Shown here in pieces: positions 1 through 14,756 of a stretch of DNA of 14,756 nt. Position 1 is the first letter of the stretch. Each line of letters opens with the position of its first letter. Made by a program: the position numbers and the translations under genes. The notes under the pieces are model-generated. The model was not told the DNA's origin. It saw only the letters and a list, made by a program, of their open reading frames with translations, and ran no database searches. The stretch lies in assembly GCA_964035545.1 (NCBI GenBank), contig CAXIUT010000202.1:1-14756 (forward strand), read 5' to 3'. Source of the DNA: Bugula neritina. Lineage: Eukaryota; Animalia; Bryozoa.

Positions 1-93
1 CCCAACCCCAACCCCAACCCCAACCCCAACCCCAACCCCAACCCCAACCCCAACCCCAACCCCAACCCCAACCCCAACCCCAACCCCAACCCC
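1..93 (+). repeat. Left telomere, (CCCCAA)n, C4A2 ciliate type
   Basis: Perfect tandem CCCCAA from base 1 to 93, C-rich strand at the 5' end as expected for a left chromosome end; unique sequence starts at 94. Confidence 0.99.
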
Positions 94-221
94 TGAATTT
101 TAGTTTTCAAAATATGAAATAAATTATAATTGAAATAATTATTTATTGAATATAGAAATAAATTAACAAACATTCATAGAAATCATAGCTATGATGATAG
201 AAATAATAAAAGTCAGTTTTA

Positions 222-2023
222 TCATTAGAGATATCCCTCAAAAACATCCTTCATATCACTACCCTTCTTTATTAACAAATTCAACTCACTCTCAATAGCT
301 TTTATCTACTGTCTCTACATCTACTTCTAAAAAACTCCCACAAAAGCTTTGTACACCTGATGCTGCTTGTTTACTATGATCTCGAATCCCTTCAAAGCCT
401 TACTTGCTATCTTTTTTTATCTGCCCTCACTTGGAGGATCTGCTCTTACTGATTGTACTATTTTAGGAGAGATGATAGGTTCAGATTGTTGGATTGAATT
501 TCTGCCCATTTTTTACATTTCCTTCATAATGTTATCTCTCTTTTACTGTAGCACTTTGATATTTCTATCTTTTTGGTTTATTTTATCATGAAGTTCTTAA
601 ATTTAGTTTCTAAGGTTTTAATTTTCTGCAAGAATAGCTCTATTTTGTTCTTTAGTTGATGTAAGCTCATTTTTTAATTTCTATTTTTCCTAGTCTATTT
701 CTTTATCTTTCTCATCTTGACTCTCCTCTTCTTTACTATTACTTATCTTAAGAGAAAGTCCTTCTTAAGGCTGCAAATTATTGATTTTATACTCAAAATT
801 ATTCTATAACTACTGCTTCTATTGCCTCAACACCTGAATCTTATATTTATATTCCTTTAATTTTATCTCCATATGATTGATCTTCTTATCTTTTGTTAAT
901 AACTGCTCATACATCTTGTCCATTGATGCTTTGTTATCAGTTATCTGACCTTCCATGATGTTCAACTTACGATTAACCGATTACAACTTAATACGTTACT
1001 GGTTTAGTTAGGATTCATGCTTTCTTGCCTTTATTTTGCTTTATTATTCCTTCTAGTCGATTCGTTGATTCGAATTTACCTTCTACTTCTCTAAAACTTA
1101 ATTTTTTGCATAACTTTTTCTCAACTAGTGATCTTTTGTTTGAATAATTCGCATCAACTTCTCAGTCTAAACCGAATAGTTTTCAATCTAATCTTAATAT
1201 ATCTTTATTTTGTTTATATAATTTTCTATCTATATTTTATACAAACCGTTCTCATTTTTTACTTATTCATTCTAAAGCCGATATTTATCACTTTCTTCTT
1301 GACTTAACTAATTTTTAAATTTTTGCAAAATTTTTTGTTATATTTTATCTGTTTATTTATCAATATTATGCTTTTAATTATGCTTATTACTAGTTTTTAA
1401 CTCTTTGATTTCCTACATTAAAGAAGGAATCAAATTATTATAATTTTTTTATTTCTAGTATTCTTTAACTTTAGCTTAAGCCTCTTCTAATTTATCTGAT
1501 ATTTATGAAAAATTGTTTTTTAAAGTTTTGTTTTGTAGTTATATCTTCTTACACAACCCATATTTCTAACGATACATATTAACTATCAAACCCATTGTTT
1601 TAAATTTTTATACAGAAACATCATTTTCTTTTAAGTATTAAATTTAACGTTGATATGATGACTCATTCTATGAACTAACAAACTATAAATTAGATTGCAA
1701 AGTATCGAATTTTATTGTCAACTACTCATGTTCATTAGTCATCCGAATCACCTGACCCTGAACCACCTCAATCTTCTACGTCAACTCATCACATTTATCA
1801 ATTGCTCGATCATACTCGCTCTTACCCAGTGTTATCTTTTTTAATTAAGAAATACCTTTTACTATAGAATACCAACATGTTTTTCTTGGTGATGAACCAA
1901 CTCGAGCAAAGCTTTGGCATTCATTTTCGATGTAGATTTTTAATCAGTAGAATACTTTTTTTAAGGAATAGAGAAGATATCAGTATCCTTTTTCTTTTTT
2001 CCACCAACCAACTTATCCAACAT
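222..2023 (-). CDS. Long coiled-coil protein of unknown function, 593 aa, 2 exons (intron 1836-1855)
   Basis: With TAR=Glu, ATG at 2023 (MLDKLVGGKKKKDTD...) reads to TGA at 224-222 with no other in-frame TGA after removing one 20-nt GT..AG intron. The product is very E/K/N/Q-rich with heptad-like segments (e.g. ILAENENLRNEIEELHDKINQKDRNIKVLQEK). Confidence 0.85.
1836..1855 (-). other. 20-nt spliceosomal intron (GTATTTCTTAATTAAAAAAG)
   Basis: GT..AG and AT-rich. Unspliced, the frame hits TGA about 75 nt downstream; spliced, it joins a 1.6-kb open frame. Confidence 0.8.
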
Positions 2024-2056
2024 TTAAAATATAAACTATCATAACAATCAATTAAA

Positions 2057-3976
2057 TCAACCTATTTGAACCAACTCATTACGCTATTGCAAATGACTAC
2101 ACATAGCATTCGTAAAAGCATCCAAGTACTAGTTAGTATATGACTTCTTGGCATGTGAAATAGTCGTCCTAATAGGAAAATCTTCAAATAATGTTTTCTA
2201 TTTCTGAGAGGCAAGATATTTCTGGAATTTCTTGTTTTGCTATTATGATAGTAGATGCTGTTGTCTGAAAAAGATTGAAAGATCTTTAATGGCCGGGTCA
2301 GCTTCTTTGCTATAATTATTTCTGAGTTCTGCCAGTTAGTTATAAAATTTTCCTATCGATTTGGAATTAGACTATTAACCCTTATCAATAGGATCAATAT
2401 CTTCTTAAGGTGCTATTTTTAATTGATTAAATTTAGATTGTTTAAGACGTTCTTCTTCTTCTTGTTCTCGAATCAAAGAAGTATTTCTTCTTTTAAGGGC
2501 ATTATTTGAACTTCTTTTGATGTTTTTATTTCTTAATCGTTTGCAATTCATCAATTCTTCGACATTAGCAACACATCCTTTGGGTAGTTTCTTCTAACTT
2601 CGACTTGGATTAATATTTTATGTTTGATTTGGAATATACTTACGAGTAAAATATTTAGTCGATCTCAAATTCTATCGGTTCTAGAGTAAAATATCTTGCT
2701 ATCTGTCTCTAAATTCTGAGTTCATACAGGTTTAATTACTTTAGTTGCTAGGCTCCTCTCCACAATCAATCTAAAATTACTCCGCAAAAGCGAGTGGTTT
2801 GCTCATTCTTTTCTTTTTAAGAATACTTCCGTTGTCGATTGCTTTTTTACTATTATGAAGAAATCTTTGCTGACTAACATGAAAATTAGATTTTCTAGCG
2901 GAATTTTACATTTAAGATACATCACGTGAAGACATTCCAGATTAGCTGTTATCCAAATTCATGTCAATTGTCATATGTTTCTTCTTTATCTTGAATTAAA
3001 AAGATTAGGCTTGTTGGCAACTGGAAAATTCTTAGTTATTGTTTTATGGTTTATGTTGTTGTTCAAGTGATTCAGGTTTTTTCGGCCTTCTTACAAATGA
3101 TAGAGGTGATTCGACGGATTTAAGAGGTTCAAGTGATTTAGGTTCAATAATGTTGATACTTTGGGTTGTTTCATAGCTCGGAACCTACTCAGTAAAAAAT
3201 ACAGGTTTATTTAAAAACCTACTTTGAGAAGAATTGCTTCCATGAGAAAGCTTTGTTGATTTTGGAACCTTAACTGTATTCCTTTATCTTCTTTAAGTCT
3301 ATTAATTATCTTTTTTCATATTTTTCACTGTTGATCTTCCACTTCTCAAATAAGAATACTCCTGTCTTTGTTTTTTAATTGTTTTATCTTCAGATTATAT
3401 TCCTGATAATTAAGGTTTGTATGTAGCTGTAGTCGGTCTTGAATTCCCTTTTGTTGAATCAGTAAAAAAATACTTAAGAATATACTAATCAGTTGATTTA
3501 GTTCCCTTATTTGAAAATTTACTTTTATTTGATAATTTTCCCTTAGAAAGATAGTTACTAGAATATTATTTAGTCCATCTAAGAAACTCCTACTTAGACA
3601 ATTCTATCTGTCTCAAAATCTAATTTTTAAAAGAATTTGATCCAACAATGAAATCCTTCAACCTCGTTATCAAAACATCACAAACTAAACTATATTTAAT
3701 CGCCACATCTGACTTCTTTATCTAATTCTGTTTAGTAGTTAATTTTTTCATAAGAGTCAATGTCTCCTTGAATAGTCTCAACTAATGATCCCTTCTTATT
3801 TGTCTATCGATAGAAGTTAAAGTATGAATATGTTAAGTATTTTATGAAGTCAACTTGTAGACTCGATTACGAAATGATGGCAGTTTATCCAATTCCATGG
3901 ATATTAGTTGGTAGAGATCGAGTAGTTAGACTATAAAGTGTTCTTTTTTTTTCAAATAATTATTGATAGCTATCAT
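2057..3976 (-). CDS. Hypothetical protein, 639 aa, helical N-terminus and K/S/N/E-rich, probably disordered remainder
   Basis: 1920-nt TGA-free frame under TAR=Glu, from ATG 3976 (MIAINNYLKKKEHFIVELLDLYQL...) to TGA 2059-2057. No family motif recognised. Confidence 0.82.
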
Positions 3977-4012
3977 TTTCTATATAGAAAACAATCATTA
4001 TAAATATCTTTT

Positions 4013-6430
4013 TCAATTCATTTTGGGATAATTTCGACGTCTCCTAGATTTTATACGACTGTGATATGAATTCATATCAATAAATTCATTATTTTCTTAT
4101 GGATAGTTACTTATATACACTGATGAAGAAGGAGTTTCTATTTATGCTTCAGCATTAATAGATCTTTTTGACCTTTGCTTTATCTATTGGCTATCAATTG
4201 TATTTTTAGCTGTTTTCTTGATCGATGGAAGACTCGATACATTTCTGGCTACTTAGTGTTATAACTAGAAAAATAGTTAAAAAAAACCTATGGCTAATGA
4301 GTTATCAAGAAGATGTGTCTTGAAGCTTGATACTTTTCTATTAGCCAACTCTGACAACTTAATCATAGTATTCCCTTAAATGAATTGTTTATTTCTATTC
4401 ATGGACAAAAGATAAACTTCAATTGGAGTTTCCATATTAACATCATGTATAACAATATGATTATTCCATTAAATTAAGTTATTATTACTACTTTTAGTCT
4501 ATGTCTGATATTTATTATTTCCTGCCTTAATCAGACATCTTTTAGTCGTGCCAAAAGATGATGTATAAACGGTAACTTTTATTTATTTTATGGTTAAATT
4601 GTATAGATACTCGTTTATTGGAATAGTTTATTCTAAAGATTTATTTTGAATTTATTTTTTATTTATATTCTATAAGTGATCTGTAGAACAAGCTGTTGAT
4701 GACTTTATTCTGTAGTCTATACTTTTCTTCTTTCTTTTCATTGTTACTGGCTCAATAGTCATCTTCTATTATTGAGATGATTTATCATTAAAAGCTATTT
4801 CACTAATTTATTCATCTATTTTATTATTTGAAAATAATTTTGAATATTTGATAGATTATTCTAGAGAATTTTAGTTTTTCTGGACACTGATATCTTTAAG
4901 AAGAGCCTTTTATTATGAAGAAATACTTTTTTATTTATTCTATTGAACAAGATCATTTTTAGATTTTTTCTTTTATAATATAGTATCCTAACGAAGTCCT
5001 CTTCGATTTGATTTATTACCTTTATTAATCTCATTACTTGATTTGTTAATATGAGATATTTATCCCTAATTTTTGTCATATCTCTTTTATCCATTTAAAG
5101 TTTTCATTCTATGACTGATACTTTTTGGATAGTATAAAGTTTTATTATCAACATAGATATTAATAGGAGATTAATTGATAGATTAGTTTTATCTTTAAGG
5201 TTACTCAGTAATACAATTTTGATAAATATCCCTTCTCTTTTTTATTTGCATTGATATTTTATTTATGTTTTGATAATTTTCTCTAGAATTTGATGGAGAT
5301 TGAAGATATTTTATTGAATTTATCGGTATATCTATTGACTCTTATTCTTTTTATTCTGTATTTTTCAAATATTTTATGTTTTTTTGTAGATTTTTCAATT
5401 TTTAATTAATTTTAGACAAAGAAACTTTTTAACTATTTTATTATGATAATTAACTTTAATCTTATAATGAGGCTTATTAAATTCTTTAAGTATGATATCT
5501 TTTTCTTTTTCTTTTGACACTTGATATAAGATAAGTAAGTTTGTTCAAACCTTCTTTTTTTATTTAATTATCATTTATAAATCTACTTTTTTAAGTTGAT
5601 AAATGTTCTATTACATCTTATTTCTCTTAGTTTAAAAAATAACTTGCATTCTTTTTATTTATAATAGATTTTTTCTGCTACTAAGGTTGTTAATTTCTAA
5701 AAGAGAATGATTAATTTTTGTTAGTTTAAATTTATTTTTTCTAAATAGATTTTGATGATTGATTAAAAATAGTTTATCTTGATTTACTTGGTTTTGATGA
5801 CTTTTACTATTAATAAATCGGTCGTCCTTCCATGAGTTATTTAACCACATTATTCGAAAAATATAAAAATTACCTATAATTATCAAGTTAAGCTTTACAC
5901 TTTGATAAATACTATTCCATTTAACTATTGATTTCTTTAAGCTATGATGTCTGCAAAGCTGTTTCTTCACTCACTACATCTTCCATCCTAAAATGAAAGA
6001 TAATTGTCTATGTCTGCTTTTTATCACAAAATTTATACAGATCACCCTATGTACAATAGTTAACTTCAGGACAAGCTTCAGAAATTAATTATGTTTTGTT
6101 ATTATTATTTCTATAGAGTTCGATATTGATTAGTTCTTTGGTATTTGGATAACAAGACCAAAGTTTGAAGACATGCTAGTATCCAGATATCAATTAGATT
6201 TATATTATTCGAGTAGTCTATCGTACCTTATTGATCAATTTGATAATGTAGTTCTTATTTAAATGTTCTTTACTTTTTTTGATTTGTCTTATGATTATCT
6301 TACTATATTCAGAAATAAAATGTTCTCTCCACTCATCAATTATACCTATTATTAATTGCAATAACCAAAAATAAAATTAATTAACTTCTAATTGACCTTT
6401 TTTAAGTAGGAAATATACTCTACCTTTCAT
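4013..6430 (-). CDS. Hypothetical protein, 805 aa, with a putative C2-like domain near the C-terminus (about 4260-4610)
   Basis: 2418-nt TGA-free frame from ATG 6430 to TGA 4015-4013. The segment YLYNLTIKEIKVTV...CLIKAGNNKYQTETKSSNNNLIEWNNHIVI...PIEVYLLSMN...IEGNTMIKLSEL resembles the C2 beta-sandwich pattern. The exact start and the domain call are less certain than the ORF. Confidence 0.78.
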
Positions 6431-6440
6431 ATTATAATTT

Positions 6441-6959
6441 ATGATTTACCATAGAATTACGGTATAACTCGCTAAAAGTTCAAAAGGAAAATGTAAAAAA
6501 TGTCAAGGAATCATCCTACAAGATACACTCAGAGTACTCGTTAAAGATGACCGGAAGTTTAATGAGTATATTTAAACCCATGGAGGTCGTTCTTAGTTTC
6601 ATGGTTAAGGGATGTATAGAGGAGGATATATTGAAGCACCTGAAGGAGTCATCTCTATTGAAAAGTATTATGTTCATCTGAATTGTTATGTACCTATTCA
6701 CAAACATCCTTTTGAAAAGTAATATTTCAAATTAGACAACTTCAAAAATCATCATAAAACTACCTTTAATGAATACTTAGAATCAAAAACAAAAGCAACT
6801 AGAGTATCAGCAACCTAACCTAAACCAGCTTAAACAAAAAATAAAACTAAAAGAAAAAGAAAAATGATCTAAAAAGACGTAAAAAGTAGAAAAGTGATGA
6901 AAGTTGCCACTAAAGTAAATACTTCAAAGACAAAGCCAAAGAAAGGGAAAAGAAAATGA
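6441..6959 (+). CDS. Small PARP-type zinc-finger protein with Lys-rich tail, 172 aa
   Basis: MIYHRITV-E(TAA)-LAKSSKGKCKKCQGIILQDTLR...KYYVHLNCY matches the zf-PARP pattern (EYAKSxRxxCxxC..I....LR...HxxC). Ends KTKPKKGKRK-TGA at 6957-6959. Confidence 0.85.
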
Positions 6960-6989
6960 TTAATTCATAAAAAAAATAAACTTAACATA

Positions 6990-7649
6990 TCAAATAAGTT
7001 GTTTATTTAAGTCAGTAAGAGGCACATACATAACACTAAGAATCTTTTTTTATTCTAGTTTTCCATTCTTTTTACTAATCAATAAATAGTCTTGAAAGTC
7101 ATTTTTCCCTCCAACTGGAATAATCATTTGCCCTCCTTCTGCCAATTGTTCAATAAGTCCTTAAGGAACTTTATCAGCAGCTGCTCCCACATGGATAGCA
7201 TCGAATTCTATCCCTTTATCTTTCGTCCAACCTAGCCTTCCGTCTCCCTGTTCTATCCTTATTTTTTATTTCAATATTTCAGGATTATCTTTTTGGATAT
7301 TTTCTATAGATTTAGTTACCAACTAAGGTACATGTTATATTCCAAATACTTTACCACTTGATGGAACCAATAAAGCCATAGCAGTTGTTAGGTAACCTGT
7401 TCCACTACCAATATCTAAGGCATATTTAGCAGTTTTAAGTTTGTCATAAAGAAGTTAAAGAGCATATGCATGCATATGAGGTGCTGATATAGTTGCTCCA
7501 TATCCTATTCTTTGAGGAGAATCTTGATAAGCTGAATTTGGAGCATAAAATCCTCTATCAACTTGCTCCATTACTTTTGCAACCTCAGGATTTTTAATAA
7601 CGTTTTTTAGAACTAAGTTTTGGATCATGTCTTTGTTTGCTTTGTTCAT
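6990..7649 (-). CDS. PCMT1: Protein-L-isoaspartate (D-aspartate) O-methyltransferase (PIMT), 219 aa
   Basis: Complete motif set: [37 protein letters not shown] (SAM motif I), VFGI-E-HVP-E-LV, GDGRLGW, FDAIHVGAAA, LIEQLAEGGQMIIPVG, VMYVPLTD. TGA at 6992-6990. Confidence 0.97.
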
Positions 7650-7858
7650 TGTGGATTTGTTATAATGATTTATAAAAGGAGCTTAAACTCTATTTTAAAA
7701 TAAAGATAGATGAAGTTATTTTGATGAAGAAGAATATATTCTAAAGAATCATAAATTCTCTTCATATTTTAGTTAAAATAAAAGAAACATTTAGACTATA
7801 AAGGTAATGAATAAAATATATTTATTGTTAGAATATAACTGTTTTAGATTGAATTAAA

Positions 7859-8554
7859 TCAAAATTAACTTCTGTTTTAGGACATATTTTCTTATTATTT
7901 TTTCCATTTTATCATTTGATTATTTCTCTAAATAGCTTCGAGGTCTATATCTTTCAACTCTGGATACTAGATAATTTATTTTCCTTAACTCGATATTTAT
8001 TTGGTTGGAATTTCATTGACCTGTTGATCATCAGGCAAATTTCTTGGATCAATCACCCACCTCTATCTGTTGTTTAATCTATCATTTTATTTAATTACTA
8101 ACAATATCCCAATACCCACTAAGAATAGCCCCATTTGAGAAAACATACTTAATTGAAGAAGAGTAGAATATTGATCCCTTTTGCAAACATCTCTATAAAA
8201 ATCATTAAACATTATAAATCCAATAATAGGCCAAACCAAAAGAAACAAAAGGAAAAAATTCCTGAAAACTTTTATAAAGATAGGCAAGTTACTTCTATTC
8301 CTTTATGGTAAACATTTCATTATACCTACGACACATGGTTGTATTAAAAACTAAGTGATGTTTACTGCCATGGCACAATAAATCCATTCATCCATTGATA
8401 TATTGATTGCTGCATTTTCAGGTATAATCGAATTTGATTAACACGTACACAACCATGGCACAAATATAACTGAAAGAAATATCTATGCAAGTCCTATGAC
8501 ACTGAATAGAAATAAGAGAATTTTTAAACACAGGCTCATACTGATTTTATTCAT
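7859..8554 (-). CDS. Multi-pass (about 4 TM) membrane protein, paralogue A, 231 aa
   Basis: TGA-free frame from ATG 8554 (alternative in-frame ATG 8539) to TGA 7861-7859. Four hydrophobic stretches, motifs CxxNSIIPExAAINxSMxxWIY and LVWPIIGFIMFNDFY..C...YST, and an acidic C-terminal tail. Confidence 0.88.
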
Positions 8555-8758
8555 CTTAATTAATATATCACATTCATTATTTGATTACTTAAAAAAGTAA
8601 TGTCTAAAATATATACTATCGATATCTAATAAATAACATTTATCTCTTTTTCTATTTTCTAATGTGTTGCTTAATTCTGTCCTATGCTGATATCACTCGA
8701 TTTCTTAAAATCATTCCTCATAAAAATACATATTAAATATGATGATAATGGAATCAAA

Positions 8759-8866
8759 TCAAAAAGAATTTATATTGCTTTCCTTTGCACTTCTGCATCA
8801 GTTAAAATCACCTCCTTTTCATGACCTTCTCCTGCATAATTCTTAACAGCTTCTTTTTCATCATAT
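8759..8866 (-). pseudogene. Relic 3' fragment of paralogue C carried along in the duplication
   Basis: Near-identical to 9841-9985 (encodes YDEKEAVKNYAGEGHEKEVILTDAEVQR) but lacks all upstream coding sequence and is about 37 bp shorter before the old stop. Confidence 0.85.
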
Positions 8867-8955
8867 GATAGATAAAAAAATCATTTAGACTATAAAGGCA
8901 ATTAATGAATAAAATATTTTATTGTTAGAATGTAATTATATAAGATTGAATTAAA

Positions 8956-9627
8956 TCAAAATTAACTTCTGTTTTAAGACATATTTTCTTATTATTTTTT
9001 CCATTTTATCATTTGATTATTTCTCTAAATAGCTTCAAGGTCTATATCTTTCAATTCTGGATACTAGATAATTTATTTTCCTTAACTCGATATTTATCTG
9101 GTTGGAATTTCATTGACCTGTTGATCATCAGGCAAATCTCTTGGATCAATGACCCATCTCTATCTGTTTAACCTATCATTTTTTTTAATTGCTTAAAATA
9201 AAAAACAAATATTCACTAAGAATAGCCCCATATGAAAAAACATACTTAATTGAAGAAGAGTAGAATATTGATCTCTTTTGCAAACATCTCTATAATAATC
9301 ATTGAACATTATAAATCCAATAATAGGCCAAACCAAAAGATACAAAAAGAACATATTCCCTAAAACTGTTAACAAGATATTAAAGTTACATCTATTCCTT
9401 TATGGTAAACATCTTAATATATTTAATACACATGGTAGAATTAAAAAAAAAGTGATATTTACTCCCATTGCTACATAAATCCAATCATCCATTGACATAT
9501 TGATTGCTGCACTTTCAGGTATAATAGAATTTGATTAACACATACACACAAGTGGCACAAATAGAACTGAAAATAAAAACTATCCAAGTACTACGACAGC
9601 TGCGATAAGATAAAAACACTGGTTCAT
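8956..9627 (-). CDS. Multi-pass (about 4 TM) membrane protein, paralogue B, 223 aa
   Basis: ATG 9627 (MNQCFYLIAAVVVLG...) to TGA 8958-8956; colinear with paralogue A, with an almost identical C-terminal tail. Confidence 0.88.
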
Positions 9628-9840
9628 ACTTATTTTATCTAATTAATATATCACAGTCATTATTTGATTAACTTAAAAAGTAATATCTAAAATATATACG
9701 ATTGATATCTAATAAATAACATTTATCTCTTATCTATTTTCTAATGTGTTGCTTAATTCTTTCCTATGCTGATATCATTCGATTTCTTCGAATCATTACT
9801 CATTAAAATACATATTAAGTATGATGATAATGGAATCAAA

Positions 9841-10533
9841 TCAGGAGGAATTTCTATTACCCAATAATCTTTAAAACATATTCTAGTAAATATTCTTATT
9901 CCTTTGCACTTCTGCATCAGTTAAAATCACCTCTTTTTCATGACCTTCTCCTGCATAATTCTTAACAGCTTCTTTTTCATCGTATATTGGCTAAACTGGA
10001 ACTCTTTCGATCTGACCACTACTCAGCAAATTGTTTGGATCCATATCTCTCTTTCTGTTCTCTTACTATGCCTGCTTACATGCCATGCAGCACAACAACA
10101 GAATGCTCAAAACAATCATACAAAAACATGCCATTGAAGAATAAATACCCAATTCTATGATAGTCGAGTAGTTATCCACAGTCGAACAGGCAGTTTAGTA
10201 GTAATCATTGAACATCACCAAGCCAATAATGCTCCAAACCAACATAAATATTACATAAAGGATATGTATGAGGACTATCATGCACATAGCACCCTCACTG
10301 TTGGATCTAGATTTAGACCCTCCACATGAAAGACAGAAAAGAAAAATAGCTGCCCCCATTCCTCCATAAATCCAATCCTCCATCGACATGTTGATAGCTG
10401 CTCCTTCAGGAATAATGCTATTGTAGTCGCAAGTGCCCATAATAGGCACGATGAAGATCGAGACTATCTACTGTTATAGAAATAAAAGACCAGTTAGAAC
10501 CAAAAATAGAACTGCACAGCAACCTCCCTTCAT
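9841..10533 (-). CDS. Multi-pass (about 4 TM) membrane protein, more divergent paralogue C, 230 aa
   Basis: ATG 10533 (MKGGCCAVLFLVLTGLLFL...) to TGA 9843-9841; shares CDYNSIIPEGAAINMSMEDWIY and LVWSIIGLVMFNDYY..C...YST with paralogues A and B. Confidence 0.88.
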
Positions 10534-10714
10534 ATTATTACTAATTAATTAGATATTAAAGATGTAATAAATAAGATATAGAGGGTGATTAATATCACTC
10601 CAAAAAGACATCATCTACCACTTCTTATTCATGAAAGAATCTGATTAATAATCTAATACTTAAGATAAATTAATGGCTGATATACATAATTGACATATGA
10701 TACAATTGATACTA

Positions 10715-11428
10715 TCAGAACATCTCCTCTTCCTAGATATTTTTATTTATCGGCAACTCAGACAACCCTTTATGTCCTTTCTCTCCCTTCTATCCATATA
10801 TTACCTCGTTTATCATAAAAATCTTTACATCGTTGCTCTACTTCACACTCAAAATCTTCTTTATGTGATCCAACTTGTCTTTACGACTGTTCTCGTGACT
10901 ATGATTCGACTCCTTCTTCTTCATCACAAAACTCATGTTGCTGAGGTTGCTCTGGGAGATGCTCTGATTTAGTTTAGGACGGTGAATGAATGAATTTTTT
11001 TGTGCATGATGGGAGAAAAAGGCTTATCCATTTCTTCTAGCTAGAGGGTCATAGTTTATCACTGGAGTTGAGGTCTTTTATAGGAATCTTTTAAGCCATT
11101 GAATGGTCTCTAGATTATCTTGGTATTTAGCTTTAGCTAATTTATTTACATCAACTTTTCTGGTGCCTCCTATTTTTTATAAAGATTTTTGGAATATTTT
11201 GAGATTGTTAACAAACTCATACTAAAACTTAGCTTTCCAATTGATTTTAGGCATTGCTACAACATTTTTATGATGTGCATCAATTAATTGGCAATAGATG
11301 GACCCAGATCCGAGATCTTCTATGAAGATAAGATCCAATTTAAGTGTTTAATTGATCCACTTAAGCAACTAGTTTTTGGATACAAAATAAGCTGAATCCA
11401 TGAGGCCGATCACTGTTTCGTTGGACAT
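10715..11428 (-). CDS. EB1: EB1/RP-family microtubule end-binding protein (CH domain), 237 aa; an in-frame ATG at 11488 would add 20 aa
   Basis: IGLMDSAYFVSKN-E-LLKWIN, GSGSIYCQLID, KINWKAKF-E-YEFVNNLKIFQ, KAKYQDNLETIQWLKRF and YDPLARR are hallmark EB1 CH-domain motifs. The protein ends EEEEMF, like the EEY/F tail. Confidence 0.94.
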
Positions 11429-11524
11429 AATATTGATTATAACGTTTAATAAAATATCATACTAATAACAGCCTCCTCTTTAAAACATTTCAACTTATAA
11501 ATATCACTAAATGAACGATCACTA

Positions 11525-12295
11525 TCATAGAACTCTACAATTCTGACAACTCTACCCATAACTATTCCTAATCGCATCAACATTGATCTGCCCACTACTA
11601 TCGCTCAACTGCGACAAAGATATATTGATTTTCATGCCTCTACAAGAATTACAATACATTTTGATGTTAGGCGAATAGATTGATTTACATTTAGGACATT
11701 TATACAACCCATTTCCTCCCATATATTTTATGATCTTCAAACGATGATCATTCAAACAATTCAAATGAAAACAGTGATCCTCATTGCAGCCCACTATCAC
11801 CCGACATCGCTAGCCATCCTTTGTCTGACTGTTGCAAATCGAACAGTTCTAGCCTTGTTTCGAAGAGGAAGTGAAATCATCACCTAAATCCCATCTTTTG
11901 AATTGACTTTGTTATGTTATATATGGATTTTGTTAGCTTGATTTATTTTATACTTCTTTAGGTGGCTGGTTTAATAGTTTATAGTTAGTGTTAGTCTTTT
12001 ATTGAACTTGTCTTTATTGCTGAGGTTGTCTATTGGATACAGGTTAATCTACTCTAGGAGCAACGATAAGATGAGTTTAGTTGGTACTTTAATTGACACA
12101 TAATCCTCTACAAAACCATACAACAGCAATAACAGCAACAAGAACGACTATTAATCCAATGGCAGTAGCAAAATTAAAGAACTGAAAGGCATCAAAGAAC
12201 TAGTGACTCTAAGAGATTGATAAATGAGTTGATCTAAGTTGCAGACTATTGAACATTAGAATGAAACAGCTGAAGACAGTTAGTTGAACAATCAT
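11525..12295 (-). CDS. Membrane-anchored RING-H2 protein (putative E3 ubiquitin ligase) with extra C-terminal CxxC pair, 256 aa
   Basis: Hydrophobic N-terminus, TM helix FATAIGLIVVLVAVIAVVWF, then C-x2-C-x15-C-x3-H-x2-H-x2-C-x19-C-x2-C (CSIC...CNEDHCFHLNC...CPKC), followed by CNSC-x31-CQNC. TGA at 11527-11525. Confidence 0.88.
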
Positions 12296-12348
12296 ATTTA
12301 AAATAACATATATAGATAAATTATTGATTTTATTGATTGGATATAACG

Positions 12349-13510
12349 ATGTCAAACCAATACAAAAGAACACAAAACGAAGTAGATCTAATCGGTGGAA
12401 CGAATAAATCAATACCAGTAGACATGATAGCCAAAGATATTTACAACCAACATGCAATCAATAAACATACTCCCATCAAAAATATACAAAATAATTAAAT
12501 ACACCAAGAATAATATCATCTGCCCAGCATGAAAAAACAAACACAATATGCCTAATACAACGCATCGAACCTATCCAAAAGAGATAAACAACATAGAACA
12601 CTAAAATAAAAACATATAGCAGGAACTCAACAACCATACCAACAACACCTTAATGTACAGAACAATGGCTATAAAAATCAAGGCTATCAAAAGATAACTA
12701 ACAATCAGATGACTAGTAATCAACATAATGGTCAACTTGTCAATCAAAATCATAGTATAAGTCAAAATCAATTAATTCAAAATAATTCAAATATTCAAAA
12801 TACTCAAACAATTCAAAATAATCAAACGATACCCAATACTAATGGCCATAACATTAACTCATATCCCCATCAACATGTAAACACGTTGTTATTTAGGTCC
12901 ATACCCATCATCAAACAGTACCCAATCATATCACTCCTCCACCACCCGAACGCTATGTCTAAAAAATACCCTACCAGTAAAAATATATCGACTACATCTA
13001 ACAAAGAGTCTGCGTCCCAGTCTAACGCGCCTACACAGACTACTACCAAGTATAACATATCACTGATTATGTACCCATTCCCAAAGAAGATACCATCTAC
13101 GTAACAGAACCTCAAGAAGTAGTCAACATGAAAGTGTAATACGTCCCAGTCGATCAGTACCTCACTCATAACATAGACGAATCATTCACTTCAAAGAGGA
13201 AGATGCCAAATACATCAATATCAACCAAAATGATATGACCCATACCTTCCAGCCAGGACAAACACCATAAACATACTATCAACCCAAACAATAGATTTAC
13301 TACCAAGAAGGACAACAACAAGTCAACCCAAACAACTACCAAGTGGAATACGCACCAGAGCAAGAGTACATAGTTCAAGGCAGTCAATTTCAACCAAGAA
13401 AATCAAGAACAAATTTCGTAACGACTGACGGCTATGACGCCAACGAGAAGATCAGACAAATTGATAGAATTCTGACTGAATCAGCTGTTAGGTCAAGTAG
13501 AGTAAAGTGA
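12349..13510 (+). CDS. Epiplasmin-like cortical cytoskeleton protein, 373 aa, 3 exons (introns 12877-12896 and 13157-13176)
   Basis: Q/N/H-rich N-terminus, then ERYVEKIPYQEKYIDYIEQRVCVPVERAYTDYYQVEHITDYVPIPKE...KVEYVPVDQRIIH, which resembles the V/E/Y/P-rich central domain of ciliate epiplasmins. The spliced frame ends at TGA 13508-13510. Confidence 0.8.
12877..12896 (+). other. 20-nt spliceosomal intron (GTAAACACGTTGTTATTTAG)
   Basis: GT..AG; its removal puts the epiplasmin-like domain in frame with ATG 12349. Confidence 0.82.
13157..13176 (+). other. 20-nt spliceosomal intron (GTACCTCACTCATAACATAG)
   Basis: GT..AG; its removal gives YVPVDQ-RIIH and extends the frame to 13510, whereas the unspliced frame stops early. 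Confidence 0.78.
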
Positions 13511-13580
13511 TATCTAAACCTATTATTAAATATATATTAAATAGTACTATAAAGTGGTATTTTTAATATTTGAATTGATT

Positions 13581-13663
13581 GGGGTTGGGGTTGGGGTTGG
13601 GGTTGGGGTTGGGGTTGGGGTTGGGGTTGGGGTTGGGGTTGGGGTTGGGGTTGGGGGGTTGGG
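13581..13663 (+). repeat. Internal (GGGGTT)n tract in right-end orientation; probable true right telomere of the 13.6-kb chromosome
   Basis: Tandem GGGGTT starting 70 bp after the last stop codon, with one variant G6 unit at 13653-13658 just before unique sequence resumes at 13664. Confidence 0.97.
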
Positions 13664-13771
13664 AACCACCAAAACAAACACAAAAAATAAATATATAGTG
13701 CCTCAGTCATCAGGACTAGCTCCCAGCAACCCTCCCATCAATAACATACTTGTACATGAATAAATATCAAG

Positions 13772-14663
13772 AAATACCCAAAAAATCCATAAATCAGAGA
13801 CTACCAACAGTAGATAGTCTTCAATTGTGTATGCATGAACACTTTAGTATGTCTGCCTACTGGTCTAGGTAAGACTCATATTGCTGCTGTAGTAATAGCT
13901 AACTTTGTTAAGTGGTTTCCCAATAAAAAAATCATCTTTTTGGCACCCACAAGACCACTAGTCACTCAACAGATGTCAGCTCTTTGCACGATGAGAGATA
14001 TGGTGCCAAGAGATATTGTATTTTAGGCTAGCGGCAAAATACAACCTCAAAAACGATAGCAACTATATTAAAAGAACCAAGTTATATTTGGAACTCCTCA
14101 AACCATCGATAACGACATAAAAAGCAACAAATTGGATAAATCCCAAATAATTCTAATTATTTTTGGTAGATATTTTAATTAATACAGATGAATGCCATCG
14201 TTCCACAGGTGAAACCTCGTATGCAAAGATAGTGCGAGTAATGCAAGATGTAGAGCATGGATTTCGAATAATCGGTTTATCGGCTACTCCAGGTCACTAG
14301 CCATAAAGAGTCCAATAAGTAATAACAAATTTGAATTTATCAAAGATGATATATAGAGATGACCAAGATCCCTCAGTTAAAAAATATCTAAACTAAAAAA
14401 AGATATAACCTATCCAAATCAAAATCAATCAAACTATCACTTAAATCAGTTAAATAATAAACTAGTTTTCAAGACCATCTGTTGGTTTACTATTGAAGAT
14501 GAAGTTAGTTAGTCCTTGGTTGGTTAAAAATGGTATAAAATCAACTAGTTTTTTTATGTTGAGATAGTAATTTAGTCAGAAGATAGGACCCTTAAATAAG
14601 AAATAAAAACAGATGGGATATAATGCATTAAAAATATTATATTTTTTAATATAATCCAGAAAA
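13772..14663 (+). CDS. FANCM: FANCM/Mph1/Hef-family SF2 helicase, partial (5' and 3' truncated; intron 14166-14187)
   Basis: YPKNP-E-IRDYQ (Q motif), [13 protein letters not shown] (I), [12 protein letters not shown] (Ia), [18 protein letters not shown] (II, formed by splicing) and [11 protein letters not shown] (III). The frame runs into the telomere without a stop and motifs IV-VI are absent. It may extend upstream to 13664 through a candidate 20-nt intron at 13752-13771. Confidence 0.9.
14166..14187 (+). other. 22-nt spliceosomal intron (GTAGATATTTTAATTAATACAG)
   Basis: Splicing reconstitutes TTT G|AT GAA TGC CAT = F-D-E-C-H (helicase motif II) and restores the frame to motif III. Confidence 0.93.
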
Positions 14664-14756
14664 GGGGTTGGGGTTGGGGTTGGGGTTGGGGTTGGGGTTG
14701 GGGTTGGGGTTGGGGTTGGGGTTGGGGTTGGGGTTGGGGTTGGGGTTGGGGTTGGG
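14664..14756 (+). repeat. Terminal right telomere (GGGGTT)n
   Basis: Perfect tandem GGGGTT to the end of the window. Confidence 0.99.

Follow-up and report, generated by a model that had tools for sequence, protein, structure and literature searches.

Reassigned UAA and UAG codons

The peritrich nuclear code (NCBI table 30), known from Vorticella and Opisthonecta and later also from Campanella and Carchesium, translates UAA and UAG (together UAR) as glutamate and keeps UGA as the sole stop. In the nuclear code of Blastocrithidia (NCBI table 31) UAR can likewise mean glutamate, but UGA is read as tryptophan and UAA also terminates. The present study concerns the code used by a single contig of 14,756 bp (CAXIUT010000202.1; below, the window) in the assembly GCA_964035545.1 of the bryozoan Bugula neritina. 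The assignment of UAR to glutamate in peritrichs is documented (PMC11687900; PMC10553269), and the original report, by Sanchez-Silva et al. in 2003, is cited in PMC4967479. In Oligohymenophorea sp. PL0344 the two codons are split, with UAA specifying lysine and UAG glutamate (PMC10553269). Tiny introns of narrow length range have been described in three peritrichs (PMC13685798).

A bryozoan host and a ciliate were sequenced together, and the window is one of the ciliate's macronuclear chromosomes. In the nuclear genes of this ciliate UAA and UAG are very probably ordinary glutamate codons and UGA the only terminator, which is the code of table 30; the code itself is already known, as the initial annotation of the window had said when it named the peritrich table. 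Read in this way, the code would show no difference from that of peritrichs, with which the ciliate also shares an AT-rich macronuclear genome and tiny introns of narrow length range; it differs from the peritrich cases in being a passenger in a bryozoan assembly. With PL0344 it would share UAG as glutamate, UGA as sole stop and the possession of tRNA(CUA) genes, UAA being lysine there and glutamate here. It differs from Blastocrithidia, where UAR can also be glutamate, in that UGA terminates. The common ciliate code (table 6) reassigns the same two stops together and keeps UGA, with glutamine rather than glutamate as the amino acid.

The value of the assignment is practical, not conceptual. 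Standard annotation would break every gene in the window, and table 30 is needed for annotating it and, as far as the sampled contigs show, the remaining small contigs with telomere caps. These small contigs are thereby marked as belonging to a ciliate cobiont, to be separated from the bryozoan genome.

Assignment of UAA and UAG in conserved genes

The assembly comprises 216 Mb in 321 contigs, and the window is the whole of one of them (C211). Comparison of HSP70, CCT and dynein genes reveals two organisms mixed in it, an animal host on large contigs and a ciliate on small ones; no contig had a human appearance. On the multi-megabase contigs C1-C9 these genes are interrupted by ordinary introns; few stops occur in the host exon matches, and none at all in the host copies that lack introns. 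The large contigs of the host use the standard code. On small contigs of 12-98 kb the same families have only TAA and TAG inside the matches.

The host could thus serve as a standard-code reference. Twelve conserved ciliate genes (five HSP70, six CCT and one Hsp60) on 11 contigs other than the window were translated with X at every TAA and TAG and aligned to the corresponding host genes. When these references were taken in six frames from both strands, antisense noise arose and TAG looked ambiguous; for this reason the alignment was restricted to the coding strand and the locally best host reference, giving 4886 well-aligned codons. The probability of each host residue given the ciliate residue was estimated from sense codons in the same alignments, and a likelihood was computed for each candidate amino acid. 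As a control on the method eight sense codons were left out, each in turn, and all were assigned correctly.

Glutamate was the best fit for both codons. At 91 TAA sites the host residue was E in 38, D in 17, Q in 8, and K, A and S in 5 each; the log-likelihood was -186.6 for E, -234.6 for D, -246.3 for Q and -298.2 for K, so that glutamate is preferred by 48 units over Asp, 60 over Gln and 112 over Lys. The 24 TAG sites faced E 14 times, R three times and other residues singly, with log-likelihoods of -45.8 (E), -64.6 (Q), -66.7 (D) and -76.5 (K), which places Gln 19 and Lys 31 units behind Glu. Glu stands opposite GAA at 57%, GAG at 56%, TAA at 42% and TAG at 58% of sites. One TAA falls at the invariant Glu of the HSP70 motif HLGGEDFD. 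In a CCT gene on contig C80 that uses TAG only, two of three TAG sites correspond to Glu in the orthologous host subunit. At first appearance TAG in this gene faced L, C and A, an impression that was overturned by the comparison with the orthologous subunit.

Reassigned codons in genes of the window

The protein-L-isoaspartate O-methyltransferase (PIMT) gene of the window (6990-7649, minus strand) has 219 codons, among them 5 in-frame TAA and 1 in-frame TAG, and is terminated by TGA. Four of its stop-free pieces match the Pfam family PCMT (PF01135) in collinear order. Two adjacent pieces align to residues 8-68 and 70-108 of human PIMT (1i1n_A), with a gap of exactly one residue between them for the TAA at 7455-7457. 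When the 75-residue N-terminal piece was used in a word search, 65 short PIMT fragments were obtained, and these were aligned to the read-through gene. Opposite the TAA at 7455-7457 (minus strand; HAYAL-x-LL) the homologues have E 38 times, Q 5, S 3 and V 2; opposite the TAA at 7335-7337 (minus strand; GI-x-HVP), E 10, D 5 and K 1; and opposite a TAG at 7323-7325 (minus strand; HVP-x-LV), a codon additional to those cited in the initial annotation, E 9, G 1 and Q 1. Several of the fragments end exactly before one of these codons (seven at the first TAA, five at the second and four at the TAG), as expected of standard-code gene calling on relatives that share the codons. Public gene calls on related DNA are cut at exactly these positions.

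One such relative (loci L088-L093, from the Joint Genome Institute (JGI) metagenomes 3300073939, 3300073940, 3300073660 and others) carries G4T2 arrays together with a tandem pair of PIMT genes, each terminated by TGA. At the position of TAA 7455-7457 one paralogue has a sense Glu codon; at 7335-7337 the two copies have D and E, and at 7323-7325 both have E. Sense Glu or Asp codons of the window correspond to TAA or TAG in the relative, and the reverse; one of its TAA codons stands opposite a Gln of the window. This related ciliate uses the same code, and its PIMT genes adjoin fragments of the shikimate pathway (SKI and DHQ synthase), a neighbourhood unlike that in the window.

The EB1-like gene (10715-11428, minus strand), which has a calponin-homology (CH) domain with a weak Pfam match and ends at TGA, was compared with three relatives. 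These have E or D at TAG 11369-11371, D, D and S at TAA 11348-11350, and E at TAG 11222-11224, where the ORFs (open reading frames) of two of the three stop exactly. Taken together, three TAA and three TAG positions of PIMT and EB1 are occupied in homologues by Glu, some of them by Asp. In the FANCM-like gene fragment the single relative's ORF ends exactly at the TAG after PGH, which matches the codon in position only, not in residue.

Those codons cited in the initial annotation that were looked up were all found in place: the TAA codons at 7455-7457 and 7335-7337 (minus strand) and 6465-6467 (plus strand), and the TAG codons at 11369-11371, 11222-11224 and 11810-11812 (minus strand). Its central proposal, that both codons encode glutamate, is supported by the best fit in the twelve genes on other contigs and by the PIMT and EB1 columns of the window.

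UGA as terminator

Read with the standard code, the window yields just 3 ORFs of at least 100 codons. With TGA as sole stop it contains frames of 829, 645 and 573 codons; in 200 Markov shuffles the longest such frame averaged 303 codons and never exceeded 508. All of the window's full-length ORFs are terminated by TGA. Elsewhere in the assembly, five CCT and Hsp60 genes have a TGA 0-6 codons beyond the end of the host alignment, and in four HSP70 C-terminal tails TAA or TAG precede the TGA.

Inside conserved matches only two TGAs were reported, and both are accounted for by introns. The first lies within a 21-nt GT..AG intron, of a length that keeps the frame; the second is out of frame once a 20-nt GT..AG intron is removed. 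Intron removal restores the conserved sequence at both sites. TGA is the sole terminator and never a sense codon in the genes examined, as had been claimed from the window. The ciliate introns, of 20-21 nt with GT..AG borders, were seen at locus L072 (contig C231, at about locus position 1289) and locus L068 (contig C204).

These gene ends bear on the most durable of the alternatives, a context-dependent code in which TAA and TAG would be sense within genes yet terminate some of them, as in Condylostoma or Blastocrithidia, or in which TGA would also be sense. Only about two dozen gene ends were inspected, from sequence alone, and this leaves the alternative a little room. Against it stand the uniform TGA ends in the window, the closeness of the five CCT and Hsp60 terminators to the conserved C-terminus, the HSP70 tails that run through TAA or TAG before reaching TGA and the lack of any true in-frame TGA in conserved matches. 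We regard such a code as very improbable.

tRNA genes

The initial annotation had suggested a search for glutamate tRNA genes with UUA and CUA anticodons, and the outcome was divided. Pattern searches, which were narrow, located two tRNA(CUA) genes on ciliate contigs, at C10:16787-16858 and C256:3981-4052, together with a canonical tRNA-Glu(UUC) on contig C54. No tRNA(UUA) gene was found in the assembly with corrected patterns, by BLAST with the CUA tRNA or with a covariance model. A 'TTTAA' candidate on contig C73 was rejected as a mitochondrial-type tRNA with a UAA (Leu) anticodon.

The C10 tRNA(CUA) has features common to tRNA-Glu and tRNA-Asp, namely UCC...GGA acceptor ends, a four-base variable loop and the T-arm. 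Its 33-base core, searched with the first anticodon base left free, matches 35 metagenome contigs, and the anticodon is CTA in 35 of 35. In orthologous ORFs on these contigs TAA exchanges with GAA or GAG 285 times, with TAG 112 times, with CAA or CAG 56 times and with AAA 13 times; TAG exchanges 161 times with glutamate codons (GAA 86, GAG 75), 112 times with TAA and 34 times with CAA or CAG. This pattern indicates that the tRNA(CUA) family travels with the UAR-glutamate code.

As separate observations, the C10 tRNA is almost invariant over the 35 environmental contigs (loci L118-L152), and the copy on C10 itself (L084) has an A-A mismatch in an acceptor stem that pairs perfectly in the environmental copies. 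The C256 gene (L085) shares only about 75-80% identity with the C10 copy, and neither is clearly Glu-like when judged by sequence identity.

Weighing of the assignment and its alternatives

Several observations count against glutamate for both codons. The genomic sample of TAG is small (24 sites, with 3 more in the window), and at about 40-55% of the sites of the two codons the residue opposite is not Glu, a level similar to that of GAA and GAG but one that would still permit a minor second reading. The body of the C10 tRNA(CUA) is not clearly of Glu type: it is 64% identical to the ciliate tRNA-Glu(UUC), and among host tRNAs the identity is 69% for Glu, 72% for Gln and 74% for Lys. Finally, the search for tRNA(UUA) was negative, though TAA is the commoner codon; this carries little weight because the ciliate share of the assembly is incomplete, with just 4 dynein heavy-chain genes.

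The small sample and the tRNA identities are the grounds for supposing that TAG differs partly from TAA in meaning, for example as glutamate plus a second residue, given that only CUA tRNAs of ambiguous identity were detected. Ten of the 24 TAG sites do face other residues, three of them R. Yet E stands opposite TAG as often as opposite GAG (58% against 56% of sites), the TAG sites of the window face E in 9 of 11 PIMT homologues and E or D, and E, in EB1, and in the relatives TAG exchanges freely with TAA, GAA and GAG. A divergent TAG is accordingly given even less credence than the context-dependent code.

Table 6, with UAA and UAG both read as glutamine, deserves consideration as the commonest variant code among ciliates (PMC11687900); Gln is also the second- or third-best fit in the alignments, and in its anticodon arm the C10 tRNA(CUA) is similar to the host tRNA-Gln. 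However, Gln faces only 8 of 91 TAA and 1 of 24 TAG sites, with log-likelihood gaps of 60 and 19 units, and in the relatives exchange with CAA or CAG is about five times rarer than with GAA or GAG. The Q/N-rich tract at 12709-12876, to which the initial annotation had drawn attention, does contain 11 CAA and no TAA or TAG. With this evidence the glutamine code falls a step lower again in probability.

Least probable of the four, and rejected here although it was the rival that most deserved a test, is the split code of PL0344. The telomeres are of the C4A2 type found in Oligohymenophorea and TAG behaves as Glu, as that code would have it; in one pair of paralogues in the window, moreover, a TAA stands opposite AAA. 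The decisive codon is TAA, which faces Lys at 5 of 91 sites against 38 for Glu, with a log-likelihood 112 units worse. At the two PIMT TAA sites the homologues have E in 38 of 48 and 10 of 16 cases and K at most once, and the relatives exchange TAA with GAA or GAG 285 times against 13 for AAA.

The Mesodinium code (table 29, UAR as tyrosine) was rejected, with Tyr at 1 of 91 TAA and 0 of 24 TAG sites, as was the Blastocrithidia code, since TGA terminates the genes examined and no true in-frame TGA was encountered.

Glutamate for UAA and UAG could be explained by a UUA-anticodon tRNA charged with glutamate, which would read UAA and, by wobble, UAG, and by an eRF1 that would recognise UGA only; dedicated CUA-anticodon tRNA genes are present on chromosomes of the ciliate. 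On the preferred reading the organism would be a peritrich. The C4A2 telomeres and the 20-21-nt introns are consistent with a peritrich but not specific to one, and the caveat of the initial annotation, that the source may be either a peritrich or an independent lineage with the same reassignment, stands. There is some chance, although a small one, that the ciliate belongs to a non-peritrich lineage with its own origin of UAR as glutamate, or that its UAG is read by a tRNA(CUA) family not descended from tRNA-Glu.

Gene content of the window

At the left end of the window a coiled-coil-like gene (222-1742, minus strand; 506 codons from the first ATG) has 26 TAA and 23 TAG in frame and is ended by the TGA at 222-224. 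It is followed by a gene of 639 codons (2057-3976, minus strand; 24 TAA and 17 TAG in frame) and by one of 805 codons (4013-6430, minus strand; 56 TAA and 18 TAG in frame) inside the longest TGA-free frame, both with TGA terminators. A small gene on the plus strand (6441-6959), also terminated by TGA, contains a zf-PARP-like piece, with the TAA at 6465-6467 directly before LAKS; the match of the piece at 6468-6572 to Pfam PF00645 is weak (E = 2.7e-4) and below the curated cut-off.

Beyond the PIMT gene are three tandem membrane-protein paralogues (7859-8554, 8956-9660 and 9841-10797, minus strand), all three containing TAA and TAG in frame and terminated by TGA. None matched a Pfam family. Identity is 77% between two copies of these multi-pass proteins and about 36% for the third; the codon exchanges among them are too few to inform on the code. 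The EB1-like gene is next, and then a gene for a Cys-rich, RING-like membrane protein (11525-12295, minus strand), with the TAG at 11810-11812, a TGA terminator and no Pfam match. On the plus strand a coding region for Q/N-rich and epiplasmin-like sequence (12349-13238) shows two overlapping open frames.

An appended fragment (13666-14663, plus strand) carries the last gene, a partial FANCM-like helicase gene that runs from the DEAH to the SAT motifs. It is open in frame from about 13995, without start or stop. The fragment has a Pfam ResIII match, weaker than that of PIMT to PCMT, and a match to residues 142-178 of FANCM in PDB 9el5_A; it is unique in the assembly, and the gene is cut at both ends.

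Chromosome structure

The window has a G+C content of 29%. Three telomeric arrays were read directly from the sequence: (C4A2)n at 1-93, (T2G4)n internally at 13580-13665 and (G4T2)n at 14664-14756. C4A2 repeats also stand at the start of many other small contigs in the assembly. The internal array is likely to be the true 3' end of the chromosome. In this layout a telomere-to-telomere chromosome (1-13665) precedes a 1-kb fragment bearing a G4T2 end of its own and no C4A2 start. Contigs C10, C11, C14 and C15 are similarly arranged, with a single C4A2 start and several internal G4T2 arrays. Such internal telomeres may have arisen through chimeric assembly or chimeric reads at telomeres, or may be the trace of new telomere addition.

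Organelle-type sequences were also noted among the other contigs. Contig C73 (70.6 kb) carries AT-rich organelle-type tRNAs (Leu-UAA twice, Phe and Glu) and may be the mitochondrial genome of the ciliate. Contig C214 has a dense cluster of at least 11 tRNA genes of organelle or bacterial type.

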